64,000 bases of DNA from Trichosphaerium sp. ATCC 40318 (GCA_038496445.1 JALMLS010000361.1:224385-288384), one strand, 5' to 3'; shown: positions 6,219-42,447, numbered from the stretch's first letter. A program made the numbers and translations. Notes: generated by a model not told the origin, from the sequence alone.

Positions 6219-8688
6219 ATGATTTTGAGGACATGTAAACTTAAACAAAAGCAAAATGTAGCTGGATTACCACAACAACGTACAGTAAACGCTAAAGCGT
6301 GTAATAATGCGTCAGTAGAAGTATCCATCAGAACACGTCTTTTTTCTGCCAAACATGGGCATATTTATACACCGTACGAACTTGCCGCAATGCTTTACGC
6401 TACCAGTTTGTCTTGAAAATACAGTTTTGGTGTCATGTCATTCCAAAGTATTAATCAATTCCTAGGCAAGGACCAGCCTCTCAGAGCTCCTCAACGTTAA
6501 CAACAGATGCCAACACGCCTTCTTTAGCTACCCATAAAGCCGTAGGTAGTGTTCCTGAACGCCCTTTCAAGCGTGTTCCAATGGGATTCTGGAATGATAG
6601 TGCTAATCAACGTAAACGTTTTGATGAGTTTGGCGTCATACTTAATGTAAAGACATTGGATGCTTGGTACCACGTGCTAGCAGACGACATATTAAAATTA
6701 GGAGGTAGAGGTATACTGGCAAAGTAAGGAAAATACGCCAAGCTAGAGATGCGTTAACTGATAGAACTTTAGGTACGATGGATCACTTGTGAAGACTTTA
6801 GCAGTGATTTATGATTGTTTCGAATGGGTTCAATGGAAGTTTGAGTGAGTATTCTTCAAGGTTTGTATGAACTAATAGGGATATAGTTTGACGTCTCCAT
6901 TGTTCTGGGAGTCCGAAGAGAATCATAGGTTATGGATGGATGATGCTGGTAATATGTTAGGCGTGATGACTTTGGATGATTGGAAAAATATATCAGAGCT
7001 TCATTTGCGCATTTTCTATGGCTGGCAGATAATAATGAGCAAGTACGGTGCTCGAAGTGGACATGTTTTTAAGTGATTTTAACAAGTTTACACAGGTATA
7101 ATAACGACCTTATAACTGCTCTTAAGTCTATTTTCCATTGGGACAAGTGGTACTCTGTGAAATTCAGGTACATTTTTTTGAATGTTTTTTTTTTACCGTT
7201 TTGGATTCTGTTAATGTTGTGTGTTAGGTACATGTTCTTTGATAGGAAGTCTGAAGTTCCGGCAAAATTCAAGTACGATTGATTAGTGACCGTAAAGGAT
7301 GTAAATTGGTAATTGATTATAAAGGAAGCATGCCAAGGGTTTACGAGTAAAACGGAAATTAAGGGCTAAACAAAACTTGGGTTTACAAAATGATACTGTG
7401 CAACCAAATGCTTCTGACTTGGTTCTTTTTAATCAAAGAGAGACGTTCAACGATATTGCACGTGCTTTGGATGTGAAGATATTAGATGGATGGTACAATG
7501 TAACAAGACGGAGTATAGAAAACAAGGGAGGAGGTCATATAATCATGAAGTAATCCTTTTTGTTTTTCGTAGTTTTGTGAGTACTCAAGTTGATTTAGAC
7601 ATGGCGGATCAATTGCTGTTACTTTAGAGAATCTTTATCCATCACATAAATGGGTAAAGGATAAGTTCAGGTAAAGAAAAAACAGCATTTAAGTTTAGAA
7701 GCCCAAAAGTTGATTCCACTTTCAGAGAGGCTTTGAAGCAGCGTACATCAGGGCATAGGCAACGATGGAAAAAGATTGATGATGTTGTTATTTTCTTCAA
7801 ATCAGTTGCTGAAAAGTTTGGCATAACAGAACCTGACATGTGGTAAGTTGGGTCAAATACAAGAAGCATGTAGTAAAATTTTATTGTTTTTTAGGTACCG
7901 TGTTTCAAGAGCACAACTTATAACACTTGGAGGAATAGGTATTCTTAATTTTTGGCCAAGAATCCTTGAAGTACTTTATCCAGAACATAAATGGAAATCA
8001 AAGAATTTTGAAGAACGTGATAAACGTTCAATGCAAAGGTAATTTTATTGAACTGGCTGTTTAGTTTTCTGAGTTTTTTCTTCTTTGTGTTCTGTTTAAG
8101 TTTAATTGCGTTTTAGATGGCTTGGTCAATGTACACGGGAAGTATTTCCACAACGTGATATTATTGAGGAATACTACCTATGCTCTAGACAACACTTACA
8201 CCGAAAATCTCAAGTTTCTTTGGATATTTTCATTCCCAGTATCAACCTTGGTTTGGAGTATCATGGTCAACAGCATTACTATGATATTATGGGTAGGTTC
8301 GGTCCTGCATCAGTTCAAGAGAATAGAGACTTGGATAAATGGCAAAAATGTAGAGAATTCGGTAAGAGACTGTTTTATGTTCGTTTAAAAAAACGTCTAG
8401 TTTTGTACATCCTTTTCTTTCTAACCAAGTTACATTTCAGGTATTACACTTGTAACAATTCCTTATTGGTGGCAAGGAGATACAGAAAGTGTAGCAGCTA
8501 CAATAAATTTCTACAGGTTAGCGCAAGCTTATCAATAAAAAAATAATCAGTCAACCTTATTATTCCATAGGCCGGATTTGGGATTATCCTTTCCCAAAGA
8601 TGTTGAACCTCTACATCAAGATCATATAAAGAAATCTAGTGCTATATCACTTATGCTTCCTAAGCTAGAACAAGGATATGTCTTGTAA
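6219..8688 (+). CDS. W-rich ~70-aa tandem repeat protein with C-terminal Vsr/DUF559/RAP-like nuclease domain (paralog 1, 4 repeats)
   Basis: Spliced model: PMGFWNDSANQRKRFDEFGVILNVKTLDAWYHV..GGRGILAKYDGSLVKTL..EWVQWKF repeats; C-terminus IIEEY..LDIFIPSINLGLEYHGQQHYYD..RDLDKWQKCREFGITLVTIPYWW; GT-AG introns keep frame; TAA at 8686-8688. Confidence 0.85.
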
Positions 8689-8930
8689 TGACACTATGAC
8701 ATATTTGAAAAAAAAAAATGTGCTGAGTTGATCTCTTATGTATCTGCACACTGTAAATTACCATGATAAAAGCGTAGCGCTTCGCTTTGTCAGTTTTGTA
8801 AGTTGTTTTGAAAAGTTTTTCTCGGAGAGAAAGGTGGTACTCACTTCGCTTGTTTACGTACTAATTAACAGTATTTGAGTTGATTCTGACTTAATATCCT
8901 ATTAGCTCCTCTTTTTTATTGTCTTTTGCG

Positions 8931-11376
8931 ATGCAAGTCACACGAGAAACATTTGCGCGTGTCCTACCTGACATTAAAAGGGCTATAAAAAGATGTGACT
9001 TTGTAGCAGTTGATCTTGAAATGACAGGCCTATCGAACACTCACGAGCGGCCGAGCACATTCGAAACGCTAGACGAGCGCTTCTCGCGTGTTCGTACCTC
9101 TGTTTCGCAATTTGTACGTGTAACCGCTAGACGTTTGTTTAATTTTGCTAGTTTCCTTGCCAACTGGGTGTATGCACCTTCACATGGGACAAACGCAAAA
9201 AAAAGTACGTTTCCAAGCCTGTTTTTGAAGAAATTGCTTTGAAAAACGTCCTGCGGTGACGCGTACTTCTTTTTTACTCAGTCCTACACTTATTGACCCT
9301 ATTTAGATTCGTTAGTAGACCATTCAATTGCTATGTATTTCCAAGGAGTTACAAAGGCATAGAGCGTTGTTACATGAGCGCGGCAAGCTCTATCGAGTTT
9401 TTAGCAAGCCACAAGTTTGATTTTAACAAGTGTATGTATGAAGGTACAGAAACGGGTTCTATACACGAAAAACGTATTGTACAATGGTTTTGAACGTCTT
9501 TTTAAGGAGTGTCATTCTTGAATGAGGCAGAAGCAAAACACTTGAAGAGAGCTCACGAAAACCGTCTTAGCAAGGTGCCTGATGTATCATATGGCGGAGC
9601 AGACAAGGAATATGTCGATGAAGTCATGTACGAAAGTTTTTCATTCTCCCAATTTGGATGACTTACTTATTCTTTTCAAAAAGGGATAAAATACAGACCT
9701 TCTTGGACACCACTGATGAACCTCATCTCGATCTTGAGCATGCTAATGGATGGAAGAGAAAGTTGATACACCAAGAAACAGCAAATAGGTACTTCACGTG
9801 GTATATCACGTGATTTTTTGATGAAAGAAAGTCACGTGAAAACGCGTTTTTCTAACTTGTTTATGTCGTATTTGAAGATTTAAAAATGCTGTTACTGAGA
9901 CGATTAAAGTCGAGAACTCTTTCAAACAATACATCCGTGTTGTACGCTGTGACGGTAAAGAAAAAGAAAGAAAACATAGAGAAAAAGTTAAAGGACTTGA
10001 GGACGAGTTCAATGAAGCTTATGGTGTTTCAGCTGTACGTAATTAGTATCAGTATTACTGTTTGTGTCGCGTAATTTATCTACTGCATATTTAGCCTATT
10101 CAGTGTATTAACAGTTGTGTGTAGATTATGGATTGCATAAAAGAAAATAAAAAACCTTTATTGGGACATAATATGTTGTTCGATCTATGTCATATTCATC
10201 ATCACTTTTGTAAGTCTCTTCCACTTACAATGGATGACTTTAGAAAATCAATTCATGAAATGTTTCCAGTGTACGCGTTTTCTCCAAATAAAAAGAAACA
10301 AGCAAGCAAAGGTACTCCAACTAACAGCTTGAAGCATTTTCGATACAAAACACTTGGCATCAACCCATCCTGCTCTTACAGTACGTCTTAATCTATTAAG
10401 CTATTTTTAATGTAAAAAAAGAGTTTGGAATCTACAGCACTTGGACCATTAAGCGAGCTACTAGCGGAAAGTTTGGAAGATGGTGAAAAGTTTTCTGGTA
10501 CCCGTCTCCTAATTACAACGCGTTAACTCATATTTCTTTGCACTTTAGTACTTGCAAAGGATTTTACAGCCTATGGCGATAAAGAAGAAGGAGATGATAC
10601 ACCAGCAGCTTACCATGAAGCTGGATATGATGCATTGGTAACAGGAAACGCATATATTGGAATGATTCAGCGTATAACGAGTATGTTAAGAAACCAAAAA
10701 CCAAAAAAAAATTCTATCTCTTTTTTAGAAGCAACAAAAGTACCTATTGTGCCGACTGATAAGTTGTTGTCATCATATGTGAATACATTACATCTTATGT
10801 TCTATGACTCCCCATTATACCTTGTAGGCGAACAGCGTAAGTAGTGAAGCCCGAATTCTTCTCAAAACCAAGAACATTTTTTTGTTCGTTTCCATTATGT
10901 TTATTCAAGTTTTTTAGGCGATGTTGACAGATCAGGCACTTTTTATGTTACTGGTTTGACGACAAATGATTCTACAAGAGATATTATGAGCCACTACCAG
11001 AAATATGGTAAAGTCTACGTAAGATGGATAGACGATGTGTCATGTTTTATCAAATTTCTTGAGTACGTTTCTTTTTGAAAAACTAAGAAAAAATGCTGTT
11101 TCTAATGACTTTACACTCAGTGACTCGTTTACTGATGAAAACAAACAAAAAATGTTCGACAACAATGACAAGTCTGCTTATAATGTAGCAGACTATGAAA
11201 AATACGTTGCAAAGCAACTAGGTACGAACTCAGCATTAGTAATTAACTAAACGTGACGAACTGATTTTTTTCAATAAAAAGACAAGAAACGCAAACCAGA
11301 AACTGACCTTGACAGAGAAGAATCGAAGCGTCAAAAACAAAGACAAAGAGAGTTTCCTGAGTGTATTATATTATAA
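8931..11376 (+). CDS. PARN: Poly(A)-specific ribonuclease (CAF1/DEDDh family)
   Basis: MQVTRETF..DFVAVDLEMTGL, SRPFNCYVFP, SSIEFLASHKFDFNK, LLGHNMLFDLCH, FDTK, YHEAGYDALVTG; RRM-like segment near 10920-11040; last exon ends FPECIIL*. Confidence 0.9.
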
Positions 11377-11620
11377 AGGAAGAACATATAAGGGCTACAT
11401 AAGACTACGATAATAAAATAAAGCAAACACAAAAAAGGTCTTTTAAATGGACTTCAATCAAAAAACTCGTTTAAAGTTACCCGAGACTAGACCACCTTCT
11501 ACTGAACCACATGGCACTTGAAGACTGGTTCAAAAAACGCAAACAAGTATTTGTCTTGCCTTAATACCTCCACGCGGAAATCTTGGCGTGCAGGTCTTTG
11601 TTTATTCTTTTTTTTTTGTT

Positions 11621-14600
11621 TTATGTAAAACTTCGTACAGAAAATACAAATGTTCTTAGTCTGTTTAAAAAGACGCCTTGTTCAGCACCAGCTGCCATAA
11701 AAAGCTCTTGAAATGAGTGTTTAAGTTTATCTGATATTTGTGGAGGATATTTTGATACTACAGCAACAGCCACTCGTTCAAAAGAAACCTATTAACATAC
11801 TTAGTACTTAAATGGAAATTAATCAGAATAAAATGAGATTTTGGTGCGGCAAATGTTTTTTGAAGTAGTGTTCAATGATTGGTTTTTTTAACAAGTTTGT
11901 TTATTGCTTGTTATAAAAGAACCTCGTTATACAAACGAAAAAGATTTGAAAAAAATCGTAAAAGTTACCTTATCAAAGTGAAGCAGATTAAATATTGCCT
12001 TGCCAACTGACTCAAGTACACCAAGATCTATCTTTGTTTTTGAAAGTAATAATTTAATGATTTCTCCAGATAATGCATTCAATCCAGGTTGTTTATCTTG
12101 TGGTAGAACTAACAATAAACGATTAGGAAAAAACCTCAAAAAACTAGAGCGTATACCATTTTTAGTCAGCTTCAGCGCATTTGCTGTCAAAACGTTTAGA
12201 GCGTCTGCACCTTTAAATGCAATAGCAGAAGACGAAGTAGATACACAATAATTTAAATCAGATAGTATACGATCAAATATGTGAGTTGGAAGCCTCCAAA
12301 TTGTCATATTGTAATTACTAACACTTGTGACAAGTAATGTAAAATACTGGCTGCTGATATCAGGATAATTAAGTATGTGAGGTTGTAAACACTGCATAAC
12401 AACATGCATTCCAAGGAAAAGTACTTCTCCTCCTTTAGCATGACGTTGATCGCCAATATGGTCCAGGATTTGTATGAGCCGCTTAAGGTCCTTACAATTT
12501 TCATTTTTTCTGTCAAACTCTGCTTTTGTTGTTTTGTATTTAGCACCTAGGACTATTAGCACGTGCTACTGTAATTTGTTTTTTACTGCGTACCTAATCC
12601 TAGCGAATTGTATAACTCAAATAATTTTGCTATTGAGCCGTAGAAAGAGGTAGCACCGACTTCATCAAGGAAATCAAGCTTAAGAATAAAGTAAGAAAAT
12701 ACAAGCGAAGCAGTTTGTCTTACCATGTACTTTGAGGCGTCTTTGAATAGAGATATGATCAGTTTAACTACAAAATTTGATCCTTTGAATACATGGAATA
12801 GTGAAATGAGTGTATCAAAGTGTTGTCTCATGAAGTTATCAATTATTTTTACATTGCGAGGTTGTGTTGCTGTTACAATGCCACGACACCACTTGTGAAG
12901 AAAAAGTTAGTAAGTCTCCAATGCTATACAGTTGTAGTTACCTCTAATACTGCTTCCACGTGATTCAGGACAGCTTGAGAGCTACATTGTTTTGTTACAT
13001 GTTGCTTATTAGCAAGCAACATCTTACATCCCGCCTGTTGCGATAGGTGAGCTTACTGCATTTCTTAACGAAAAGGCAATAAAAAGTACATCAATAGGTG
13101 TTATTATCTGGTTATAAAACATAGGTCTATCGGCATCAGATACACCAAGGGCTAATTGCATAACACCTGATACAAATCTCCTATGTGCATTTGTTAGTAC
13201 GTCTTGGTTTCTATAGAAACATGTGCCTTTGTAATCTACCAGGTAGTTTAATAAATTTTTCTGTTTTTTCTGTATAAATAGATATCAATCCTTTCCACGC
13301 ATCTGCGTTAAATTATCAGTAGGTAAACGTGTAAAACTACACATTGTATTCCTACCTGTGCTTGAAATAAGGACACCATTCAAGTCTTTCTTTGCCACTT
13401 GTGTTAATAAATTGCAAACCTAGTTTAAGAATAAGTTAACCGAACGACACACAAGAAAATTGAAGTAATACCTGATCAACAACATCTTCTTCAAAGTGGT
13501 AGTGTACAATGTTAATCACCACTTTTTGTAATATGAATTCTAACAGTTGGTATGCACTTTCACTACGTCTACCATACGCTCTTTGAAGACCAGCACTAAA
13601 ATAAATTAGCAGTCAAAAGCAGAAAACTATCACGAAGGATAATGTTACCTTATCGAGTTGTTGCCGGCAGGAAATAATAAATATACTGGCACCCATCTCT
13701 CTAATAACATGCATGTGCGCTCACAAATAAGTGGGCTCCACATTTCAAGTTTGTTCTCTGTCAAACACTTGTTTTCGAACTTGATTATATTAAATACAAC
13801 GTTCATCAATTGAACTACCAAGTCTGGTTGCTAAGACATTTGTCAGCATTAAAAACAACTGTCAAGTCACTAGTATAAAATAAAAATTGTACGTTTGCTT
13901 GGGCACATTGAGAGCAAGCCGATTTTATCCTAGGAGGAATACAAGGTGTCTCTGAACTGAATTTATCAGCAAGAACATATCCAGATATTAGAAGCAACCA
14001 ATTTAATTCCTCCAGAGTATGTACAAGCAAGACACCTTTAAAAGCGCAATGTTAATGGATTGTCATAGTGGGGAATGGTTTGTAGTATACTAACCAGAAC
14101 GAGGACCATCTTTTGCGAATGCAACGAGTTTATCAAAGACAACTTGAAGACGACTTGTCAAAAGTCTTAGACTTGTCACAACATCGTTTCGTGCGAGCGT
14201 AGCAACAGCATCTAGTTCATCATCATATTTTAACTAAACAACATTACTACTACTCTAAGCATACGCATTCACAATAACTTACGTCATCCTTAAGGGAAGC
14301 CAAGTCGATATATTCATCTCCTTCTTCTGATAGCTCCTGTTGCGCAACAGAAATTCGTGCATCAACATAAGACATGAAGATCTTATTTGTGTACTCTGGT
14401 GGAAACGTGCCACTAGGTCCCTTTGCTAGAACTTTAAAAACAGTATGGTTAGTCCATCGGCTAGAAGTAGGTCAAGTTGGAGGTACCTAAAGCGAGCCAA
14501 ACGAAAATCATACTTTTGAAAGGACGTTCGACAAGTATTCTGTCTTCCTCATCTTGTGCACTCTTAAACTTTCCCAGGCAAAAATTATACCACTCCAATA

Positions 14601-16215
14601 ATGTATTGATAAATTTCTGACCTAGTGCAAGTTAGAAAATACTCAAAAGTATTAAACTAGGTACCTTCTGGAACGCTCAATATATTTGTCAATCCAAAGT
14701 TTTTAACAATCTTTTCTACAATAGTACACACGCCATCAATAGCCTCTACATTATCGCTACACAAGAAATATTAAATTATATCATAAAACAACAACGCACC
14801 CTGACTGAGACATTAAATGTTGTGTAACTTGGATAAGTTTTTGTAAATGTGCAAGGCGTGAATTCTTGTTTTCGAAGACATTCCCATCTGAAAAGTTAAG
14901 TTAATCTACAAATCCACACGTATTTACCTAAGCATGCTAGAGCAGATATACCGCCAACTATTGAAAAATATGCTTCTTGTTGCTTGACAAATCCGTAAAC
15001 CTTCAAAAAACAATTAAAACTGAGTAAAAGTAACATCAATTACGTTAGCATAAAATTGAAGTATCCTCGTGTCTTTTAACAGCAAATCTCGCCACGCAGC
15101 GCCTGGTTCGATTGTTACTGAATTTCCAGTGTCTAGAATACCAAGGAATTGGCCTATTCAATGCGATTGAGTGGATAGTTTAGTGACTGGATTATGGTGC
15201 TTACCATAATTATCAAAAGGCCATGTCAAGACTGAACATATAACTTTCAGACCGCTTCTGAAATACTCTAGATCACGTGTTTTTTGTAAAGATTGTTCCA
15301 TTAGAAGTAAAGCATATCTCATGACGTCTAATAGATCTTTTTGCTATATACAAAGTAAGGAGCTTTGGATATAAATAATTGTTAAAACCTGGAATGATTT
15401 GAAACAACTGCAATGAAATTCACGCGAAACTCCAAGCCCAGATGCACTTCTAAAGGAACTAAACTCATCTACAGTAGCATTCAAGAGCTCAAGAGCAATT
15501 TTTAGCTATGAAATAATGTCAACAACGATGCAATGAGGATAACACAAGTATCTTATACCTGCGGTATTGTGCCTTCTCGCAATTTGTTAAGGTTCTGCCA
15601 GAACGTGTCACGAAGAGCTTTGTGGAATTCTCCTGCTTGTAGCGTATCCTGATCAATCCAACCACGCTTCATAATCAAAGCAAGGCACTTACAAGCCTAC
15701 GAAAAATGTTACAAGCACAGTCACTACGAAGAATAAAAAAAAAGTACTTGGTTTATGTTGTACGCCTTTGCTGTTTCTGCTCTTGTCACGATGTACGATA
15801 ATATAAAATCCCGCCATTGTATAACCTGTAAAGGAGGGAGAGTATGCCATTGTGTAGGAATAACGTCCTAGTAATGTGTCACGCTTGAAAAAAGTCACAA
15901 TAGTGATTACCACAACGTACCTTCAACGCTGTAAAAATCTGGTACTGCATCGCTTCAGAGGCATTGTTTTCTATGAAGAAGTGACTAAAACGTTCAAAGA
16001 CGCGCCCATAGCGTATATTGGCGTACCTAACGCGTACTGGCTGACCGCCAACGCTTGAGGAGAGTTTCTGAATTGTAACAAGAACTCATGCCCATGAGAA
16101 GAGGGATTTTGCTATTACTAGGTGTTATAGTTGCTTTCTCGGTGGAGCGTACACTAAATGCAAGACACGCGGCCTCAAGTTTCTGTGCTATCTGTCTTAT
16201 CTCTGTTTGTGCCAT
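11621..16215 (-). CDS. XPO4: Exportin-4-like karyopherin (multi-exon)
   Basis: MAQTEIRQIAQKLEAAC.., ALIMKRGW, VDEFSSFRSASGLGVSREFHCSCFKSF, LEELNWLLLISGYVLAD..ETPCIPP, LNYPDISSQYFTL: motifs typical of exportin-4. Confidence 0.8.
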
Positions 16216-16475
16216 TTTGGAGCGCTAAACTGAAAAACGAGTGTTGTTCAGTACAAAATAGACAGGCGGGATTTTTAAATGTAGCGTTGTATTACGTGTG
16301 TTTGTATAAAGTGTTAGCGATTGACAAGTGCTGCCAGTTGCTTAGCTTTGTTCGAAATGTTGTGAGAATTCAAAAAATTCGGTTTGACTTCTGTAGCTGT
16401 ACGTCAAACTTCTGCTCAGAGCGTCTCATAGCAATACACACTATTAAACAGCTTTAAATTTCCAACTGCGACAGT

Positions 16476-17593
<1,118 letters not shown>

Positions 17594-17685
17594 AGTTGCG
17601 CGTAGACGGTTTTGTTGGTTAAGTTGGTTGTAAATGAGTTAAGGGAATGTACAAACAGTTTTTGTGTGATTTTAGTAAAAAACGT

Positions 17686-19807: not shown

Positions 19808-20073
19808 AAAAACTAGAACAAAATATTTAATAAAACACATCAAAAGCATCAAAAAAAAACATACGACTGTTTGGTGGATAAAAACTTTAAAGTGATGTGA
19901 CAATTTTTTGATGAGGTTGTAATGTAAAATATTACTGTACATCAAAGTCAAGTACATGTGTTTGTTATCAATACTATAGTTTAGGTATTTGCGTTTATTT
20001 ACAGCTAGTTTGTACAAAGATAACCAAAAAAACACCTCCTATGTTCAAGAACTAAGGCAAACAAATGGATTTA

Positions 20074-22876
20074 CTAGTGAACTAAAATTTGGGAAGCCTG
20101 CATGCCTTTGTCTGTGGCATCTAATATTACTATTAACCACGATCCTGATAATTATGTTTACTTACGTTCTGAATTAAAGTGATCATCTTCCGGAAGGTGA
20201 ATTTGTTCTTGTTCATTGGTTTTTAGCAAATTTACAAAATTTGATGTTGCATCTGTTATCAGTTTTGTCAATTGCTTTTTATCGCCTGGAACCCACCAAT
20301 AAGGTACAGATACGAGAATAACACCTAGACCATCATTAAAAGTGATCATTGGCAGAATTTTAAGCACAAATAAACATGAACGGAAACTGTGATCAGCTAA
20401 CAAAGTCTAAGATTCTTACCTATTTGTCGACAATATTGAACTTTCTGGGCATCAAGAGACTTTGTAATTGCAGATGGTGCTGCAAACCGGAACACATCAT
20501 GGTAGTGCTGCTCTCCTATGATGAAAGAAGGTTACATTTTGTGTTTGTTCAATGTTTGTGACTTGTCATTTAATGATTGTACCTTGATACTCAAGTGCTA
20601 AGTTTAGAAGTGGAATATAAACATCTACTGTTACTTCTTTTTGTGATAAATCATTTAGCCCAATTGAATGCTCCTCTCGTACAATAGTGTTTGGAAATAA
20701 AGACTTTACAGTATTCACCAAAACACTATTTAAAAAAACTGTTAGTTTCATAAAGATTACAGGCTATGGAGGGAATCCACGTGTCAGTATAGTTGTACTA
20801 TAGTGCCATAAAAGAGAGTTGTGGCAACCTTTGCAGTTCAAATCGTTCAAACTCTTCGCTTCCTTTTTCCCAGGCTTGAAAGTGTTGTATAAGCGAAATA
20901 CCTTAGGTATTTCTGGTGGAAAAAAAAGGTAGGGTTTGAACGAAGAGAACTGTGGCTGCGCAACTAAATGTTCTTTTGTACCCTTGTAAAGATTTTTTGC
21001 TCATTAGCGAGAACTTTTTCCAATCCCATTTTTTGTTTGGATACATTACTTGAAGGATATGAGGGAAAAGTGTTGTTGTGCACAAATCATGGAGGTTTCT
21101 GAATTGCTCATTTGATATTCTGTACCTACGAGATAAGATAAGTACCAATTGTACAAAGAAAAAAAAAGAGAAAAAAGACAAGAACATTAGAAGATAAACG
21201 TCACTATACCACATGTATGGATCTGAAATGTCAAGCATTTGTTCCACTTTTTTAATATACTTTATCTGGTTTTGTTCTGTTCTCCAGAACGCTGTAGGTG
21301 TACGCCTAAATATGGAGTATTTAGTTTGATTACCAGATAAAAAGCAATATTGGAGAATATTGATGCATAACGTACTTGAAGGATAATGGAGACCACTTGT
21401 ACTTTGGATAGAGGTTTACGAGAGTCCGATACAAAGAATGATTATACCTGTACCAAGTTAACAAAATAGCTGCGCAACAAACATGATTTTCCTCTCTTTT
21501 GTTGAACTTAAAGTTGCTGATAAAAATTACCTTTTAAGGACACTTGTTGCTCCAATTTCTTGTATTTCAGGGGCTTTAGCGTTATACCATTCATCCATGG
21601 TTTTGTATCCTAACTCATGAGCAACTTCATTAAAGCTATCCACTTGGTTTTGTTTACTATCCCAGTAGCTATGAGGTGCACAACTAACCCATAAAAACCT
21701 TGTAAGTTGGAAATCTAAAATATTTTTAGATTGTACGTGAACTTCCATGGTAGCCATCTGAACTCTGGATACAACGCCGTCATTACGTTATACATTGATG
21801 TCTTATACCTACAAGTAAAATAAATAAATACCGTTATGACTTGCCACAGTAAATGAATGAAAAAAACCGGCTTGAACCTGTTAATTATGCTAATTCCGCC
21901 AGATTTTTGTATTATTGCGTTTGTAACATTGTACCAATCTGTCATTACTTTAATACCAATATTTTCAGCTATGGTATCAAAGCGTGCTCGTTGGTTTTTC
22001 TTGTCTTCCCAGCAACCTACTGGAGCTGTACTAAATCACAATTAGACCAATCACGTGATAAAAAAGTAGAAAAAAAAAAAGTTTTTTGTTGCTCGTTACC
22101 TGAAACGCCAAGGTTCCCAAACTATCTCTGGATAGATAGTTTTAAGTGTCAAGTACAACGAGCCATTGTGCCTAATTAGGTAAATTACAACGTAATTTCG
22201 TTATCCTAAAACAAGTACTCCCAGTGTCTACAAATGTAATGGAACGTACAAGGCTAGTATCCGCTGTCCACCATCAAAATTAGCTAGGTCAGCTACAACA
22301 ACGTTATACCATTTGCTTGGTCTATCAATGCCTAGTTCCACTGAAATCTGATCGTATCTTTTACGTTTGTTTGCCATACTATTCCAGTATCTCATTGGTG
22401 CATTTCTTTTATGTTTGTGAGTTTTCATTTAATTGGCTGCGAAACTTGAAGTTTGTCATGGTTCTCAACCCTTACCTGAACTTCCAAGGCTCCCAATAAA
22501 ACTCTGGGAATACTGATTTAAGCATAGTGCTCATTGAGCTGGAGTATCTAAAGCAACATGAGTGGTTGGAGTTGAAGATTGTATTCATTGAAAGTGTCAC
22601 TTTCGTAGTTTAGCCCTGTAAACGATACTGCTGTCACAATTATAATCATTGCGTACAAAGATATTAGCTTACTGTAGCCTCTCTTCAACATTTGGTGTTT
22701 TGTAATATAATACCAGTCCTCATACAAGCGTACATGTAGTATAGGCGCCAGCTCATTCAATAATCTACGTTGATAGCGCTTATCCCGGAAAATGTCTTGT
22801 GTGTATAAATTTAAGAGCAAATGGTATTTTTCGCACTCTCAGTGACCGGTTGGGCGACTGTTCGACTTAATCTCAT
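20074..22876 (-). CDS. W-rich repeat + Vsr/RAP-like nuclease protein (paralog 2, 5 repeats); start approximate
   Basis: Repeats such as APMRYWNSMANKRKRYDQISVELGIDRPSKWYNV..GGQRILAL..IYPEIVWEPWRF; C-terminus VREEH..VDVYIPLLNLALEYQG|EQHYHD..GVILVSVPYWW. Confidence 0.82.
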
Positions 22877-27170: not shown

Positions 27171-27269
27171 GTTGTAAATAAACTGAGCACTTGTCACGTG
27201 TTCTGTTTACAAGTATCGAGGTTGGAACGTTACAGTCAACTTTTTTATTTTAGGTTATTTTTTTAGTAG

Positions 27270-28992: not shown

Positions 28993-29595
28993 TATGTAAT
29001 TACTGGAAGCTAGCTTTACGCCAAATATTGCTCTGGTCTACTTTAACGTGAAGTATGTTGATTGCGATAAACGGAATAATTAGTTATGGCTAATTTTGAT
29101 TTTGCTCATCAAATACCCAGCGAGTAATTTGATCCCTTCCTCGTGTCACTCTTTATTATGATTTAAAAAAAGCCTTTTCCCTCAATCCCGTTTTCTTCGT
29201 GTACTAGTGAAAGCAGCCACAAGTAAACAAAATAAAATTTCCTTTTCCAGATATTAGTTCACAATGTTATCGCTTTTCACGTCTCCAGTAAAGGTTCGCT
29301 TTTGAAACTGGGTTTACAATGAATATTATACGTAGGAAATGGCTATGAGAATGCTCACTATGGTACAATAGTAGACTAAATGAGTTTTGAAAAAAATTTC
29401 TTTAACATCAATACTTTTCCTCAGCACATAAACGAATCGCAAAATAGATTTTGGGCCTATAAGTGTAGCATTATAGCTACACGTTAAAAATACCAATTGA
29501 AGTTTAAGATGGTTCTGAGGTGAGTAAAAACGAGACGTCTCAAATATCTTCGATATATTAAAAAATCAAAGTTCCATAATTTTTCGAAACTGAAT

Positions 29596-29911
29596 CAAAA
29601 GCGTTGCTCCTCTAGGCACCATCGAGAAGCCCTCTCCTTTCTGTGCCTGCGCCATTCGTAACTATTGACGCCCAAACGTACACGAAGATGGCCTCTGCCT
29701 GAATCTTGTAATGGTTGCCGTAAAGATACTTTATTGGTTAACATAGTTGGTGGCGATGGCCACTTCTTGCGATTGGTATGGAGGCTTTGGAGAGTGTACA
29801 TCCCTACGCGATACCTCACTGACGCAGGCAGAATGCGCCACCTTACTGTTACGAAACTGGACTGGCTGAGGTTTGAGATATTGGCTTTGGATTTCCGGCT
29901 ACCTTTTTTTT
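29596..29911 (+). ncRNA. Candidate structured non-coding RNA (possibly Pol III)
   Basis: GC-richer island in a long intergenic gap; nested complementary segments tgcctgcg/cgcaggca, gtacac/gtgtac, gaagatggcc/ggccacttc; ends in a T run; family not identified. Confidence 0.4.
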
Positions 29912-30349
29912 GTTTTGAGGCTTGCAATATATTCCTATTAGAGTGTATGTATACGCTATTAAGTTGCATTAACTACGTTCAAGCCTACCTTCATGAGCCT
30001 GCATCAAACAAATTCCGTCGTATAGTCTCTGTAACGTAACCTGCAGCAAAACATACTAGGAGCGCTGTTGGATCATGTGCTTACAAGTACAGTGATGGTA
30101 GATGGCCATTGTGATACAAAAAAAAAGGAGAAGCAGACGAAAATATAAGATTGGTACAAAACTCAGTAGCGATCCTGACGAATGCCAACACTTTACTTCT
30201 TAATACATAATAAACGAAATGACAAATAAACACCATCATTTACTAGTGACAACAGCGTAGTACTAAAATAAAGAAAAATTGAGTGCTGGTGCATCACTCT
30301 TTTTTTTTTTTCGGGCTTTGTTGTGACTTATTAATTCATTAATGAGCAA

Positions 30350-33300: not shown

Positions 33301-34571
33301 CGGGGGTATTACTTACCTTGTACATTGGAGTTTTGATACCAGCCAAAAGAACTTGGAATACGACAGCCTCACCTCTGTCGGTCAAATTAGGGACAAATAC
33401 ACGGAATGTGCTTCCTGAGCGAATTTGTTCAATTACGCCTAATGGGAGTGAGAAAAACTCAATGAATAAGGGCACAATACCATCAAGTGGCTTTTTCTTG
33501 TATTTGTTGAAGAAATCAAGGCGATTTGAGTCTGTGATTTCTTTAATCTTTCTAGGTGCTCCAGAAGATGCGTCTGCGCTAAATTGGCCTACTTTGGCTT
33601 CTTTTGCTTTGGTTTGAAGAGCATTTACATAGCTAGAAACTCCATCAACAACGAAATAAAAATACAATAATTACATACTCGTAAAGGTACTCATCTTTGC
33701 TACCACGCTTTCCTTTACCTTCATTTACAGTGGCAAAACCAGCGGCTACGACAGCAGAACGGATATCCTTGGATAAATAAGCGATTTTTGACTTTATATA
33801 TACTTGAATTCAAAACAAAAAAATTTGTGAAGGTCAGATTTTCATGGTACCTTATCTTTGTCGAATTTTGTGCCTAGCCAGACTTCAGAGTAGTTACGCA
33901 AGCCTTTGCCAAGAGAGTGCTCAATTCTGAAGGTAACAGTTTGGCCAATGAGCTTCTTACGCAAGAATTCACGAGCTGCGAAAGCGAATTTCTGAAAAAA
34001 GTGTCAGAACGAATTTATAAAATAAAATTACGGCTTACAGCTTCTTTTTGGTCGTTGCTACGTCCAAATAGTCTGGTGAGATATGGTGCGCGTAGGCCCA
34101 CGAGAGTGAGTTCTTTCTCTTCAGGGGTACCACTGACGGATGAATCAATAACCCAAACCTACGCAAGAAGCTACGTCAGCATAGAGAGGGAATAAAAAAA
34201 TTATTTCTGACAAAAAATTTCGTTTCAGTATTCTTTTGGCGTACCTTGATTGTATCTCCTGAAGTGACCTCTTTTACAAGACCGCGGTACAATTTATTTC
34301 TGTCGGCGCTTGTTTGGCGCTCCTTTGCAGCACGTTTACCTTTGTCTTGGCTTTTGTTAGCGCCTTTGTTTGCGCCATTGTTTGAGCCCTTCTTTGGTGC
34401 AGCAGCGCGACCTTTGTTCTGACGTACTCCAGCAGCGACGTTGGATGCTCTGTTGCCTCTTGCGCCTCCGTTTGACCGCTTTGGCGCTTGTTGACGAACA
34501 GGTTGCGCAGCAGGTGTGCTCGAAGGTTCGCTTGCCTTCGACCAATCCTTTGGTTTGTTCCACGCACTCAT
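30350..34571 (-). CDS. SND1: Tudor staphylococcal nuclease (Tudor-SN)
   Basis: GLVKEVTSGDTIKV, AREFLRKKLIG, EPFAREAKFY, NIAIELLQVGLA, NVALELVRRGFAKV, Tudor GDICVAKFDADGQWYRAK..FVDYGN, C-terminal IWQYGD. Confidence 0.95.
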
Positions 34572-35644
34572 ACTGTAGAAAAGGCGTCAACAAAACACGG
34601 AAAAGTCTCTATACTTTAAAAAACACTGCAACTGTTTAGTAACTAGCGACAAGGATCCACAAAAGGCTAACCAATAACGTCTAGCTACTAAAGAGGCACA
34701 CACAAGAAGATCTGGAGCAATACGGAACGTACGAGGAATAGGTGTATTAAGAACTAGTGAGGTGTTCGCAAGTAAGAGAGGCTTGCTTGGTCAAAACAAA
34801 TAACTCTTAAAATCTCAACTTAAAATTGGGTTGGACTTTTTTGTGCAAAATTTTCCTACGCTAAAAATTGCCAACAACGAACTTCACTCTGCTTCCTATG
34901 TTTATTTCTTTGTTGAAGCTTTCTAGTTTTCGTTAAAACTCCAAAATTACATTATTTCGCCACGTAATCACTGCAAACCACTTGTAATACATTTATTGAG
35001 CGTAGAGTACAATGTAGTGAGTGTATTACCAATATCGCCACGTGGCTGACGACTTTTCGTGGTGGGTCAAGACCAGTGAGTCAGATTGAAAAGAGCTGCA
35101 ACAACCTTCCACAGGACGGCCCTCGCGTACGGTCGCTATTTTTGGTGCAACTAGGTGCGCAGCTTCGTTTGCGAAGTAAATCTATTAAACATACGCCGTT
35201 TTACAAACGAAAACCTATTTTTTAGCGTGCCAATGCATTTTGATGAAAAATAAAAAGCAGTTGAGTTTCTTAGTTTTTAGTTCTGTTATTCAATGAGTAT
35301 ACGCAATAGATCTATACTAAAAGAATATCCCTAACGTGAAAACTACCTGTAGTTCGAACTGATCCTTAGGAGGACTAGAAACACAGTTTTCCTGAAGCGG
35401 AAAACAGAACAAAATTTGCAGCAGTCCTGTGAGTGACTCGTACAAGACCAGTTATGGCATATGGCCATATGTGATGTGGCTATTAACGACTTAACAAAAA
35501 TGTGAAAAAAGTTGTTTTTTGATGGCATAAAAAACCGCTTGGAGTTTATTCCGCAGTCAAAGTTCGTTTGTTACTCAGTCGTGGCACCAACAGTTGTGTG
35601 ACATCGCTGCATGTATTTTGCGAGTGTACCGTTGGTATTGACAC

Positions 35645-37906
35645 ATGAAAAGTGCTGCTACGGCGTTTAAACGGCTACAAGAACCTACCATTAACCGACG
35701 GAGGCAGTATCTTGACCATTATGCAGAGGACAAGCGTATTTTAATTCTAGACGACTGGTACAACGTTAATTACGCTGACTTAAGATTTCACTCTAGAGCT
35801 GGCATAGTGTACGCAATTATACGACCAATTGGTGTTGAAAAATAAACTAGTTACCAATACCACGACAACCTAGTGTCGTGCCTTGCACATACTTACCCTG
35901 ATATGAATTGGAAGCCGTGGCGCTTCAAGTACGCTTTTTTGTGATAAATGTAATTACAATGACAACCAAAGGCAAGTGTCAGCAAAGGTATGGCAATTAG
36001 CGCAGCACCAAAGGGAAGCTATAGAATATGTCAGCGAAGTATTGAGTGTAAAGGAATTAGATGCGTGGGCTGGAGTGACAATAGCTGATTGTGTCAATGC
36101 TGGTTTGGGCGGACTAATGTGAGCTATGAACAACGGTAATGAAAACTTATTGCATTTTTTATTTAGCCAAACGTGTTACAAGGGCTCATTGACAAGCTGT
36201 TTGAGCACTCTATACCCAGAGCACGTGTTTAGTACATGGTCAGTTACTAAATTCGTTTTTTGTAATCATTTTTTGCTTCTTCTTGTTAATGCTGTATGTC
36301 AGGCTTACAGATAGTTTAAATAACGTTGCAATGGATCTTAAGATTAATTGCTTGGATGATTGGTATTACGCCAGTATTACTGATGCTGTTAGAGGCGGTG
36401 CAAGGCTTCTTATGTAATTTTTGTGTTTACTGAAATGTTGTACTCATTATTGTTTAACAGTGAACGTTATGAGACACTAGCTAACTGTGTTTCTATTGCA
36501 TATCCCCATCATTCATGGCAACTCCACAAGTTTGAGTACGAAGGATTGTTTGTTCTCTCGTTTGCTCATAGTGTCGTAGATCCATGCCCTTAGACTATTG
36601 GAGCAACGAACAGAATCAAGCACTTGCACTTAATGAAATATCACAGGAATTGAACATCAAGAGTTTGAGTGAGTGGTACAATTACGAAGAGTCTAAAATA
36701 CGAGTACTCCTGAAGATGCACGTTGCAAGCGGATTACTGTACAAATGTTCACAGCAAGACATCAAACTAATGTATGCTTTGCAGATCTTATTTTGATGGC
36801 TCCGTTAGTGCCTTGCTTAAAAGCTCTTTCCCTGGGAACTCTGGTGTTAAAAGAGTATTCAAACGGAAATCTCTTAACTGGGCTGAGTTATTTAAACGCA
36901 TTCCTTTGACTCGACCAAAAAAGCAAAAATCCAACAATAGTGTAGAGTTGTTTGATCAAGCAAGGGAAGATTTCAAGACAAGACCATTCACTTCAGCTAA
37001 AAAAAGTTATTGGCTCCACAAAGGAGATGACATTGCATTCTTATCAAGTGTAAAAGCAAACTTGCGGATAACTAATCCAGAAATGTGGTACAACTCTTTT
37101 TGTTTTGGACTTTTATCGCATGTATGCGCACTAAGCTATGTAGGTACCGGGTTCCGACTCAACTATTAACAATGTTTGGTGGGCGAAAGCTTATGAAGAA
37201 CTGGCCTCACGTGCTCAAAAATGTTGAGCCGAACTTTCCATTTGTTTGGGAAAATTTCGCTACAAGTACTAAACAACATAAGCAAACGTACGTTCAGTCC
37301 ACTCTATGTTTGCAACAAGCTCACTTTTTAAATATTAGTAAGCTAAAGGGAGTCATACAGTCGATATTCCCAAATTGTACAGTAATGGAAGAGACTACAG
37401 TTGAGTTAATGTCCACAACCAAAAGTGGTGTTGTTGTTGATGTTTATGTACCATATCACAACCTTGCTATTGAGTATCAAGGTGTGCCTTGATGTATTTT
37501 AGCATATTAATAGTTGTATTCAGGCGAACAACATTACAAGGATGTATTTAAATGGCATTCTAGCAATGTACAACGATTACGTGATTCAGAAAAGAAGCAG
37601 CTCTGCGAAGATTCAGGTACACATTGTTAGACAATCTCTCATTTAACGTATGCGACTAGGAGTTGTACTTGTTCCAATACCTTTTTGGTGGAGTGGCGAT
37701 AGAGCGTCCATAATGGCTACGCTTATGTACTATAAACCGAGTTTAAACTTGAATGTTAGCAAAGAAGTGGCTCCTCTTTTAGATTCAGATTTTGATTTTG
37801 GAGGTTTGCATTTTCTTTCTTTGCAGGTATTTTAACCATCTTTTTAGCTACCAACATGAAAATCATGAGTCCTGGAGAAGGTGATGTATCTGGAGCTGTA
37901 CAATAG
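35645..37906 (+). CDS. W-rich repeat + Vsr/RAP-like nuclease protein (paralog 3, 5 repeats); start uncertain
   Basis: Repeats RRQYLD..LDDWYNV..YPDMNWKPWRF, PLDYWSNEQNQ..LNIKSLSEWYN; C-terminus VMEET..VDVYVPYHNLAIEYQG|EQHYKD..RDSEKKQLC..GVVLVPIPFWW. Confidence 0.82.
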
Positions 37907-37985
37907 CGAATAAGTGTGTAGTTACATTTGTAAATAGTAGTTGGGATTGTTTATCTTTATTGTTGAAAACTCTGGTGTACAACAA

Positions 37986-39026
37986 TTACAGAACTCCGTC
38001 CATCGCCTTGATAATCATATTGACGCAAGTAAACTTACATGGTGTCTTTTTATTTGTAAACAAGTTTTTTATTGCTTTTGTAAGTGTACACTTGTAACTA
38101 AGTTTTTTTCCATGTACAAACTCCCACATCCTTGTATTTTTGAGTATACCCAGCCATTTAATACCCTCTTCTGTTATATTTTGACACTCCATCAACGTGA
38201 TGGTGTGTGCACCGACCAAAGCTTTCAACCCTTCATCTGTTACCTTTGTTCCAGAAAAGTAGATTGTGTGTACACCTGCTAACGCTTTTATGCCCCTATC
38301 TGTGATTAAATGACAATTCTCCAGTTTGATAGTGTGGACACCTTCTAGTGATTTCAAACCTTTATCAGTTACTTTTGTTCCTGATAAATCAATTGTATGT
38401 ACTCCTTTCAAAACTACCAAACCTTCGTTTGTTATATTGGTAAATGCTAATCCAATTTTGCGCACCGGCTCTTATCTGTTATTAAACATCCACTCAGGTT
38501 TATAGAATAACACCCTGCCAAGGGAGTCACTCCTTCATCTGTAATATCACAGTAAGACAAGTTGATAGTGTGTACACCAGCTAACGCTATCAAGCTTTCA
38601 TCAGTTACCTTTGTGTATGATAAATCAATGTCATGTACACCTGCTAAAGCCTTGATTCCATTAGCTGCAATATGCCTACAATATGAAAGACTGATTGTGT
38701 ACTCCCGAAAGCATAATTAAACCATCAAATAGCTCAGGGCTTGGTAAACTATTGTACCAAATTTTCGTGTTCTGAAGTAAAGGGCTACCAGAAAGCAGGT
38801 ACAGATCATCTTCTTTTGTTACGTAAATATTACTATATCCAACGTGCATATGGACAATCTCTCGCATCAAACGACAGGTTTGGGCTGATCTCAGAGTAAA
38901 TGTGCCGCATTTCAAAATAAGAACGATAATCTCAACTGGAAGCGAGATGAGGTTGACTGAACGCCATTGGCTTGGGCCAGAATCGTTTGTCTTTTTATTC
39001 GTTGGTTCGTTTCTTCTTTTTTCCAT
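37986..39026 (-). pseudogene. Intronless F-box + leucine-rich-repeat (GVHTIDLS type) gene with two frameshifts
   Basis: F-box LISLPVEIIVLILK; LRRs GVHTIDLSGTKVTDKGLKSL continue across three frames; breaks near 38696 (CAC A ATC, likely 2-nt loss) and near 38470. Confidence 0.8.
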
Positions 39027-39338
39027 GTAGTGTCTATAAAATGAAGACCGCTAATTTGTAGTCACCCACGTGAAATTGTTATGATAATGTTAACTAAAAA
39101 TTGAATGAAGAGTCTTGACCCGCCTTGGAGTAGACGCGTACTAAATAACATTGTAAAAGTATAGGATTGCTTTACTTAACGTGGATTGTAGAAGTTAATA
39201 ACAATAAATCACGTGATACTTTGACAAAGGAGAAAAAATTTGATTTAAAAAGTTAACTACTATCCATACGGTTGCTTATCTGGATTAGTTACAGTTGTTA
39301 CAAACAAGTACTTGGTTTTTTTTTTTGTATTTCATAAA

Positions 39339-42300
39339 TTACATTTTAAGTGCACCAATTTCTTTGGCGCTTACACTATGTGCTAGATTCTGTTTTACAT
39401 TTATATTTTCTGTGATGAGTGCTTGTGTATTAGTAACCGAAGGTAAATCGATGTCTGGCCTGATAGGTTTTAATAAGAGAAGAACAGAAATAGTTTTATA
39501 GTACCTAAAATGTGCTATAGTTGAAATTAACGAGCTGTTGTCACCTTGCTTCCACCAATATGGAATAGGAATTACTGTAATACCATAGTCATGACATTTC
39601 AGGACCTTGTCTGTATCTCTACTTTCTTGAGCACTCGCTGAACCAAAACTACTTGGATTGTCATGGTAATGATGTTCTCCTTGATATTCAAAACCTAGAT
39701 TTAGGCTTGGAACAAAGGCGTCTAAAGTAAACGTTGTAGCAACATCCCCTGTCATTCCTGGACTATATTCCTCAATGATGTCGCGTCCAGGAAGCACTTG
39801 GTGTAAACATGCTATCAGCCGTCGTTGGTCCGACAGTTTTTTCCGCTTAGAAAAGGCAGATGCTATTAGTTTGTGATTAGGATAAATCTGATGCAAGACA
39901 CCAGGCCAGTGTGGAATGAGACCGCCTGCACCAAGAGACTTTGTTCGTGTTAGAATATATGGGTGATATTTTAAACCGCACCGTTAGGTTTGCTTTAGAG
40001 ACTCTGTACCAGTCTGATATAGACCCAATCTTAAGCCTTGCTCTTGTACCGGCAAGAAATGCTTTTACGTTAGCTTTGTCAAGCCAGTATCCACGTTCAT
40101 GGGCTAATTGGTAATGTAAAAACAACGAAGGTGGCATGTTCTTAAAGGCTAAATTGTCTTACAATCGTTACGTGCGAACAAGTGCGAAGGCCAGTTTTCA
40201 AATGGATATAGTTCCTGTAGCATTGTGCGCATGCTGTTGTCAAAGTAGCTTGAGTAAAAATAAGCTATCAGCTTGAAGTATTCACCAGGCGTACACGAGC
40301 ATACTTCTACCACCATTATTCCTGAAGAAAGTGTGTTGAACTGTATGCCATTGCTTTGTACTTTGTATGTTGAACTCTTTTGCTTTCTAGACGAATGATT
40401 TGGAAAAAGGTCGGTAATTTAACACACGCACGTGTTTCATAAATGCCAATTGATTTTCTCTTTTTGTCCAGAATCCGTTGGGTACACGATCTAGAGGCAT
40501 TTAGAAGGTAATGATGCATTATTCTTACGTAGGTTCCATGGTTGCCATTTATGTTCAGGGTATACATTATTTAAAGGTTCATATAGAGACCCATTAAAGT
40601 GCCTAAAAAAGTGCTGGTTAGCATACATTTAGCTAATGGTTTTTTTCGCCGTACGCAATAAAATCTTTCACTTGGTCCCCCAGTGCATTGATATCTTCAT
40701 TGCTAACTTTATACCAGTCCGTGGGTTCGCGTATTTGCAAAGAGGATTCGATCTATATAACTCATGTGAACGATTAATATTGTGAAGAGTGTACTTTGTG
40801 TAAAAAGTCTTTTTGATTTTGGACCCTATCCCAACGTGATGGCTTCTGTGGAGCTACAAATTTGCCTATTTACAATTAACAATACAGCTTGATGACAAAA
40901 CCTACGTTTTGCTTTTGGAGACCAATCATGTACTGGATAGAAGTGCTCAAGCGTAGTTTGCCAAGATTTATCAAATTGTCTAGGTTTCTGTTACTATAAC
41001 ACTACAATGCTAACAGACTTGCCTTAACAATCCAAGACCACCCAAATTAGTTATATCTGATGAATCTACATAGTTCCAATCATCTATGATCTTTACACCA
41101 TAATGTTCAGCAGCCTTTTTAGTTTAGCGAAACCATAGTATGTTAAGTCACGTACATGTTGTAAAAATAGTTTCTGATTCGATTGTGTCCACCAATTTCT
41201 TGTCATGTGCCCTTGTAATACTACTAAGTACTCATTGATAACATGGATCTTACTGAATTTCCAAGGCAACCATATGTAATCAGGATAAATGTTCGTTAAT
41301 AACTTGGTAAAAGTTCCTTCTCCTAGTTTCCTGGCACACATGTTACTCGCTTATAACTGGTTTAGGATAACATACACTAGCCATGACTCGCCACCTAAAC
41401 TCACGAGGCTTTTGAAATTGACGTGGTACCAATGATGTAGTTCTTTTATATTGAGACTCTCTTCCACCTTTTGTTCCGTCAGCATCAATCAAAGAACACT
41501 CAAACTTACACTTCTTATAAAATCTATACGATTTTCTTCACGTGCAAAGAAGTTTTCTTGTACTTGTGCTAACATGATAAGTTAGCGGATGCTTTAATAT
41601 GGTGTATGCGCATACGAAACTTCCATCCACACCATTTGTATGAAGAGTAGAATGCTTCCAGAAGCCGTTTCATAGTGCCGTAAACGCTAGGATTTTTGTT
41701 TTGTTTGTTGTATGATTATTAAGCATGCAATACCTCCAAAGACCTCGTGCATATTTGTGAAACCTAACATCTTTCGCTCGCACTCGGTACCAATCACTGA
41801 CTTGCTTTATTTTAAACTCTCGTTCTAGCTATGTCAAAAATATACGTCAATTCTCTTTCACATTATCACGTGATGTTGCACCTCCAAGAACATGTCCATC
41901 TGATAGCTGCGACGCGCCCAGAAGTAGCCCGGCTTGTACTCTTCATTAATGTTAACCCACGCTACAAGTAATATAACGTACTGAATTTCCATGATTCCCA
42001 TTTATACTTTGGATACACACTTCGTAACGCAGGGTAAATGAATTTGTAGTGCCCTAGAAGGTTGCGACCACCTGATGTGCGTAGTGTCTCAGGTCTGACT
42101 GTGTACCAACTGCTTAGATCATTAAAGTGCAGACGGCGCTCAATCTAACCAATACGTTAGTACTGACAGGAAAAATGTAAGCCTATATTTCTAAACCTGT
42201 TTTATGATCCTGAACACCTCTGTGTTACTGAATCTGGCATCTTTGGTCGTTTTAGACCTGTTTGGAACATGTACTTTTGTGGGTTTGTTCTAAGCTGCGT

Positions 42301-42447
42301 TAATTCGCTTTTTTCGTGGTTGAATAGCGATATTTACGTTGTTGCGCCGTTTCTTTCGGTTCTTCGTTAATTTTGGCTTATGAGCGATCAAACGTATACG
42401 CGCTCTCATAAAATAGTATGTGTACGCCCAAAGTTACTTTGGGGCAT
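39339..42447 (-). CDS. W-rich repeat + Vsr/RAP-like nuclease protein (paralog 4, 7 repeats); start approximate
   Basis: Repeats e.g. IERRLHFNDLSSWYTV..GGRNLLGHY..VYPKYKWESWKF, PNGFWTKRENQLAFM; C-terminus IIEEY..LDAFVPSLNLGFEYQGEHHYHD..RDTDKVLKCHDYGITVIPIPYWW. Confidence 0.82.

Follow-up and report, generated by a model that had tools for sequence, protein, structure and literature searches.

Four old paralogs in Trichosphaerium sp. join arrays of an unstudied 75-residue repeat to a predicted Vsr-type nuclease domain

Repeat arrays that aim enzymes at nucleic-acid sites (PPR, PUF, TALE, OPR-RAP, and HPR-RAP) are informative for organelle biology and make useful tools. A 64,000-nucleotide stretch of DNA from Trichosphaerium sp. 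ATCC 40318 (GCA_038496445.1, JALMLS010000361.1:224385-288384; hereafter the window) carries four genes, g1 to g4, that encode arrays of a ~75-residue repeat followed by a nuclease-like domain, which raises the question of what these proteins are and what they act on. We found that they are members of a very large family with a conserved Vsr-type catalytic set, and we tentatively propose (probability roughly 0.45) that the family consists of array-directed, site-selective nucleases that would act on DNA, for much of the family in the mitochondrion.

An open reading frame (ORF) scan found no long ORF in the four genes (the longest in the window, 339 amino acids (aa), lies elsewhere), and in a six-frame motif search the repeat motifs and four IP[YF]WW tails fell precisely into the four gene intervals. 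Short GT..AG introns (37-256 nucleotides (nt)) interrupt the genes, and each unit is cut by an intron into an A-half exon and a B-half exon. Hidden Markov models (HMMs) made from few seed units matched 18 A-half exons (W..NQR..F...DWY.V....GG) and 14 B-half exons (Y.GSL...L...YPE..W.PWKF) at E values of 1e-7 to 1e-21, with zero matches outside the four genes within the 64 kb. Gene models were built by dynamic programming, using frame-specific support from the half-unit HMM matches and splice matrices learned from the region, and junctions were then corrected by paralog comparison (four in g2, one in g4); the first exons of g1 (6219-6545) and g4 (42447-42229) have splice-site scoring as their sole basis and are of low confidence. 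All four spliced models run from the ATG to the stop codon given in an earlier note on this DNA, with one terminal stop each, and encode 550 aa in 15 exons (g1), 537 aa in 15 (g2), 555 aa in 13 (g3), and 677 aa in 22 (g4). The four paralogs and the unit counts claimed in that note (4, 5, 5, and 7) agree exactly with the spliced models and with a full-unit HMM. These are spliceosomal-intron-rich nuclear genes, scattered among housekeeping genes, with the following features:

6219..8688, plus strand: gene g1, 550 aa, 15 exons, 4 units and nuclease, isoelectric point (pI) 9.55; first three exons of low confidence
6219-6279, 6332-6373, 6466-6495, 6546-6723, 6773-6844, 6887-7042, 7096-7167, 7228-7272, 7325-7549, 7599-7670, 7726-7842, 7895-8038, 8117-8361, 8441-8516, 8571-8688, plus strand: exons of g1, curated model
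6572..8009, plus strand: array of g1, units 6572-6842, 6900-7165, 7431-7668, and terminal unit 7760-8009 (unit HMM, E 1.8e-25 to 9e-16)
8117..8516, plus strand: predicted Vsr/DUF2726-type nuclease domain of g1, with D441 (codon 8223), E452, G455, H458 (8274), and RD..K at 476
20074..22876, minus strand: gene g2, 537 aa, 15 exons, 5 units and nuclease
22876-22837, 22795-22657, 22547-22476, 22405-22250, 22171-22100, 22030-21878, 21808-21737, 21683-21531, 21447-21376, 21305-21210, 21125-20982, 20725-20583, 20515-20420, 20324-20166, 20120-20074, minus strand: exons of g2, curated model
21011..22843, minus strand: array of g2, units 22843-22478, 22401-22102, 22026-21739, 21679-21378, and terminal unit 21304-21011 (unit HMM, E 9e-27 to 2e-14)
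20250..20725, minus strand: predicted nuclease domain of g2, 3 exons, with D424 (20625), E435, G438, H441 (20507), and LD..K at 459
35645..37906, plus strand: gene g3, 555 aa, 13 exons, 5 units and nuclease; transcribed and spliced
35693..37243, plus strand: array of g3, units 35693-35926, 35976-36306, 36316-36533, 36584-36833, and terminal unit 36996-37243 (unit HMM, E 2e-17 to 3e-10)
37339..37803, plus strand: predicted nuclease domain of g3, 3 exons, with D444 (37439), E455, G458, H461 (37532), and RD..K at 478; junctions RNA-supported
39339..42447, minus strand: gene g4, 677 aa, 22 exons, 7 units and nuclease; first three exons of low confidence
39870..42240, minus strand: array of g4, units 42240-41983, 41822-41617, 41563-41255, 41200-40913, 40836-40533, 40488-40179, and terminal unit 40098-39870 (unit HMM, E 7e-23 to 5e-12)
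39460..39830, minus strand: predicted nuclease domain of g4, with D566 (39722), E577, G580, H583 (39671), and RD..K at 601

The 256-nt g2 intron (20981-20726) was picked by paralog comparison, introns here being typically 37-95 nt long. An alternative g2 model has an extra in-frame exon at ~20799-20858 (EEFERFELQRLPQLSFMALY) directly ahead of the nuclease domain, which might reflect alternative splicing or an error of the model. In g3, the B-half of unit 4 is degenerate, and a basic linker of ~55 aa precedes the terminal unit.

Intron positions record how the arrays arose. The regular units of g1-g3 each have a phase-2 intron at unit position 49-53 (51-52 in g1 and g2), with further phase-2 introns between units, and their terminal units always have an intron at position 32 that separates W from Y. 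The scheme of g4 differs, with a phase-0 intron at unit position ~20, a phase-2 intron at ~50, and phase-1 introns between units. These symmetric phases and the two schemes indicate that duplication of symmetric exon sets enlarged the arrays, in two or more old sub-lineages. Between a unit and its best match, identity is now only 29-43%, and terminal units from different genes are mutual best matches, closer to each other than to neighbouring units. Pairwise, the four proteins share 24-29% identity overall and 30-40% in the nuclease region; these low identities show that g1-g4 are old paralogs and not the product of a recent tandem burst.

At least one of the genes is expressed. In a public transcriptome run (X1), contigs that are 100% identical to the window skip six of the 12 g3 introns, all six of which had been predicted independently by the gene model:

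36536-36579, 37088-37143, 37288-37338, 37482-37523, 37617-37659, 37804-37847, plus strand: g3 introns skipped in the transcriptome contigs

These contigs span every nuclease exon as well as the terminal unit and extend through the 3' untranslated region to 38044. In the same run, a g4 fragment (39450-39649) turns into unlike sequence at 39552, which leaves g4 with no clear RNA support there. Contigs with loose ends at 37464 (g3) and 39552 (g4) match conserved nuclease exons only, followed by 255 unlike letters; they resemble transcripts of other paralogs, and several family members may therefore be expressed.

Searching 1.84 billion cluster representatives (50% identity clusters) with an A-half profile made from window sequences only returned 5,124 cluster proteins at E <= 1e-3 (329 of them at E <= 1e-30), which makes the family very large. 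The nuclease domain was present in 86 of the 153 family proteins fetched, mostly at the C-terminus. Named sources are transcriptomes of Cavostelium apophysatum and Physarum polycephalum (Amoebozoa) and Heterolobosea sp. BB2, as well as MMETSP transcripts, and ESM Atlas clusters extend the family to Tubulinea and Discosea. Paralogs are also clustered on long intron-poor contigs, which neighbours such as TBP, Utp12, SRF-type MADS, and kinases identify as eukaryotic. On one of them, a 1.5-Mb metagenome contig (L001, 5525-11838), three members (4, 6, and 7 units) alternate in strand over 6.3 kb, and another locus (L003, 8001-14375; P0001) encodes the longest array that we met, a single 2,124-aa ORF with 25 units and a nuclease. 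We found no description of the family in the literature.

Within the family, the repeat has a period of 74-78 aa (mode 75) and occurs in 2-25 units per protein. The best-conserved columns among 561 database units are aromatic or Gly/Pro (W7 89%, W32 97%, G45 88%, P66 85%, W70 91%, and F75 99%; N12 reaches 74%), frequencies that agree with the consensus given in the earlier note, and the most variable columns (37, 38, and 41) lie in or around the third helix. A distinctive terminal unit (MWYRVS..GG....WP..L..YP) is found in all four window genes, as had been noticed. In a full-length model of the relative P0033 (predicted local distance difference test score (pLDDT) 87.5; predicted template modelling score (pTM) 0.44), the unit is predicted to form five helices, one of 14 residues and four short ones (e.g., H57-70, H76-81, H84-89, H93-98, and H103-110). 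The modules appear compact and their placement relative to one another is uncertain, so that the model does not demonstrate the solenoid with a groove raised in the earlier note. PPR, HPR, OPR, and TALE repeats were ruled out by their period (34-38 aa rather than 75) and by zero Pfam matches to these families, and 107 units searched singly and as a profile gave no significant match among Pfam families or solved structures; matches to SAM_TNK were sub-threshold only.

The closest contact with a curated family is DUF4046 (PF13255), a 90-position Pfam model of which positions 12-87 align with one unit (P0237 residues 144-213) at 21.7 bits, the best score met, against a cut-off of 22.8; the relationship is plausible though below threshold. 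In precomputed data 13 of 120 relatives bear the DUF4046 tag, as does one cluster of Discosea proteins in the Atlas, and automatic naming in databases has labelled some relatives "DUF4046" or "RAP domain-containing". Against the window units DUF4046 gave nothing at E <= 10, it was outside the top 25 families for the 107 database units, and we found no paper that mentions it. The repeat family is thus unstudied but not new to databases, and the suggestion that it might be undescribed holds for the literature, where no paper on it was found, but not for the databases, which touch the unit through DUF4046 and automatic names.

The C-terminal motif D[IVA][FY][IV]P..NL..EY[QH]G.[QH]HY...[RL]D..K...C...G......IP[YF]WW is complete in each of g1-g4, including the acidic and His residues singled out before. 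An alignment of the domains of 69 relatives showed that D60, G74, H77, and D96 are invariant and that E71, Y72, K99, P114, and W117 are nearly so. Catalytic residues are D51/H69/D97 in Vsr and D196/H213/D222 in I-Bth0305I (PMC3239194); judged by motif order and spacing against these sites, the invariant D60, H77, and D96 are the predicted counterparts of the catalytic Asp, His, and Asp. The D-to-H spacing of 17 equals that of I-Bth0305I, and the corresponding residues are D441/H458/D477 in g1, D424/H441/D460 in g2, D444/H461/D479 in g3, and D566/H583/D602 in g4, where the second D is that of [RL]D..K. DUF2726 was the sole curated family above its own cut-off in relatives (best 26.4 bits versus 24.7; 43 of 69 relatives match at E <= 1), with RAP matching one of the 69 domains at E 0.037 and DUF559 likewise one, both at E 0.04-0.1. 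The window's own nuclease pieces had no Pfam match (spliced g2 domain, E <= 10; unspliced g1 fragment 8106-8546, E <= 1). The P0033 domain was predicted by AlphaFold2 with a pLDDT of 92.3 and an alpha-beta-beta-beta-alpha-beta-alpha core. Vsr, DUF559, and DUF2726 have been placed together in one PD-(D/E)XK group (Steczkiewicz et al. 2012, PMC3424549), and the DUF2726 matches of relatives, the catalytic set, and the predicted fold support the earlier assignment of the domain to the PD-(D/E)XK nucleases, Vsr/DUF559/RAP branch, with DUF2726 as the best curated match.

Is this domain a working enzyme? RAP-type domains are known as structural ribosomal proteins and inactive binders (PMC11879112), and SAM-like five-helix modules often interact with proteins (the sub-threshold SAM_TNK matches are the only hint of this here). 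The array might then serve protein-protein contacts, with the nuclease-like domain in a structural or binding role, as in FASTKD4 and mitoribosomal RAP proteins. We consider such a non-catalytic scaffold very improbable, since D/E/H/D/K is invariant or nearly so in 69 divergent relatives and present in all four window genes, conservation that is not expected of an inactive domain.

Tandem binding modules joined to a Vsr-like nuclease are already known as a design from RAP and I-Bth0305I-type proteins. RAP proteins (FASTK, OPR-RAP, and HPR-RAP; among them human FASTKD4 and FASTKD5 and the Toxoplasma mitoribosomal RAP proteins) have the same overall architecture of helical repeats and a Vsr-like/RAP domain, but their repeats are helical hairpins of 34-40 aa, the repeat region here does not superpose on FAST_1/FAST_2 or HPR repeats, and Pfam RAP (PF08373) is essentially unmatched by the nuclease domains here. 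The phage I-Bth0305I or "EDxHD" homing endonucleases use NUMOD or helix-turn-helix (HTH) binding modules in place of a 75-aa unit, and their genes lie within group I introns or inteins of phages, unlike g1-g4, at which we met no signs of homing-endonuclease mobility or of a group I intron or intein location. Prokaryotic Vsr/DUF559/DUF2726 nucleases share the fold and the catalytic residues but are single-domain proteins or fused to modules other than this repeat array. PPR-SMR proteins and engineered TALENs have the design logic of modular array plus nuclease in common with the family, although neither part is homologous.

Charge and leader sequences bear on where the proteins act. The window proteins have pI values of 8.7-9.6 and the family a median of 9.0. 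Leaders of at least 20 aa occur in 101 of 229 complete members (~44%); the first 20 residues of leaders lack D and E in 50% of cases, against 7% of random windows, and a simple presequence rule (acid-poor and basic) is satisfied by 63% against 15%. These presequence-like leaders would suit organellar RNA-processing factors, in which the array reads a site on a mitochondrial transcript and the Vsr/RAP-like domain cuts or binds it, an amoebozoan and discoban counterpart of FASTK, OPR-RAP, and HPR-RAP. A large, divergent paralog family also fits the one-factor-per-RNA-site logic of PPR, OPR, and HPR proteins; FASTKD5 cleaves mitochondrial pre-mRNA (PMC12242768); and Amoebozoa and Heterolobosea, where the repeat-nuclease family is expanded, belong to the lineages (Amoebozoa and Excavata) in which a survey found RAP undetectable (PMC8190603). 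This role is possible, but we hold it with less confidence than action on DNA: beyond the near absence of RAP matches and the repeats that do not superpose, the full Vsr DNA-nuclease set is kept here, in contrast to FASTKD4, in which Asn replaces the catalytic His and which behaves as an inactive protein (PMC11879112), and to FASTKD5, whose RNase activity is reported to need no metal and to depend on another key residue. DNA ligase, Pol X, and C2H2 fusions, putative giant-virus bins, and a bacterial copy (all described below) also fit it poorly. The analogy to organellar RNA factors drawn in the earlier note thus survives as one of two live readings, with the catalytic set and the fusions pointing at least equally to DNA.

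Three relatives join array and nuclease to an ATP-dependent DNA ligase (P0049, P0082, and P0224) and one to Pol X (P0233), and members in putative viral bins combine the array with C2H2/BED zinc fingers or a DUF559-like nuclease. In the BFVD viral structure library, relatives of the nuclease carry labels such as phage or giant-virus homing endonuclease, group I intron protein, and restriction endonuclease, and structurally similar Atlas clusters join the nuclease to other tandem DNA-binding modules (DUF723, treble-clef Zn, and NUMOD1). We favour DNA because of the intact Vsr-type metal site, the homing- and restriction-annotated relatives, the ligase and Pol X fusions, and the C2H2/BED fusions in viral bins. 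In the mechanism that we propose, an array of 4-7 divergent five-helix modules would hold the basic protein on nucleic acid and choose the site, the specialised terminal module would connect this array with the enzyme, and the enzyme, a Vsr/I-Bth0305I/DUF2726-type endonuclease dependent on Mg2+, would nick or cut nearby. The substrate is more likely DNA than RNA, and much of the family probably acts in the mitochondrion. Most likely, the proteins would nick or cleave organellar (or invading) DNA at selected sites, with fill-in and ligation to follow.

The distribution beyond eukaryotes raises a further possible role on DNA. The nuclease core EY[QH]G.[QH]H[YF] occurs in at least 507 viral and at least 577 prokaryotic loci (tblastn-confirmed) of bacteria, archaea, and phages. 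Array and nuclease occur together in one of the 80 prokaryotic loci examined, a 577-aa protein with six units on a Deltaproteobacteria metagenome-assembled genome (MAG) contig with a sigma-54 activator among the neighbours (L084). This member (1792-3525) adjoins a Schlafen/AlbA_2 and HATPase_c_4 gene (4233-5876), which has weak PADLOC matches to Argonaute-associated proteins, and the setting may be a defence island. IMG/VR contigs, retrieved by a pattern back-translated from the unit, carry uninterrupted ORFs of 4-6 units, including two putative giant-virus MAG bins (L262 and L300) and a 117-kb putative viral contig (L263). Together with the viral and Atlas relatives and the extreme divergence of the paralogs (24-29% identity), these loci would fit defensive or selfish nucleases that cut giant-virus or plasmid DNA, or domesticated homing endonucleases, exchanged among amoebae, giant viruses, and bacteria. 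We regard this as unlikely: the window genes are old, intron-rich, and set among housekeeping genes without recent duplication, PADLOC gave no match for the family, the leaders suggest an organellar housekeeping role, and the viral nature of the bins derives from bin labels and not from hallmark genes. Counting it with our own proposal, which likewise involves DNA, we rank DNA slightly ahead of RNA as the substrate.

Several observations weigh against site-selective cleavage of mitochondrial DNA by these proteins. Fusions to DNA enzymes are few (four of ~250 proteins examined) and absent from the window genes. To our knowledge, the well-studied eukaryotic proteins that combine helical repeats with a Vsr-like/RAP domain (FASTK, OPR-RAP, and HPR-RAP) all act on organellar RNA. 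The top Foldseek hits for the whole protein are Toxoplasma mitoribosomal RAP proteins, weakly, and the structural matches to RAP proteins cover model residues 343-466 only, ending at the nuclease domain. Mean net charge per unit is just +0.5 across the family, and the arrangement from unit to unit is uncertain in the P0033 model, as its pTM of 0.44 indicates. Presequences were assigned by a composition heuristic, not by a targeting predictor, and the window N-termini are only short and basic (MRLSRTVAQ in g2 and MKSAATAFKRL in g3) or, in g4, acidic.

The family would follow the same design as PPR- and TALE-type systems with a different, unstudied module and a nuclease that, from its sequence, still looks active; the binding module is new in that it is unstudied, and we found no description in the literature of its pairing, in so large a family, with a nuclease that seems active. 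Identification of the substrate would fill a gap in amoebal mitochondrial RNA handling or reveal a new form of site-directed DNA nicking and repair. More speculatively, and in our estimate improbably, the 75-residue module might be a new natural nucleic-acid-reading unit, each reading a few nucleotides through its variable helix positions, with the array-nuclease proteins and their Pol X and ligase fusions forming a protein-guided system to cut, fill, and seal mitochondrial genomes or transcripts. If the units do read sequence regularly, they would offer a new programmable scaffold for designed site-specific nucleases.

Variant architectures occur in several relatives. In three IMG/VR ORFs (L262 258-1823, L312 650-2236, and L326 1285-2982), the array ends in C2H2/BED-type zinc fingers that replace the nuclease. 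Two others (L263 1733-3439 and L300 9708-11720) have six units and a C-terminal ...C..SGF.Y.FIWESEW domain, which is unmatched by the nuclease HMM or Pfam and may be a divergent Vsr-like domain. P0026 from Cavostelium has two tandem nuclease domains after the array (341-478 and 549-695). P0109, P0015, and P0047 have C-terminal extensions of ~300 aa past the nuclease, with no Pfam match, in the position that the ligase occupies in P0049 and P0082; these extensions are candidates for divergent ligases or for new partner domains.

Elsewhere in the window, the only long uninterrupted ORF (299-1318, plus strand, 339 aa) encodes a MORN-repeat protein (MORN_2, 8 stretches, E 8e-43).

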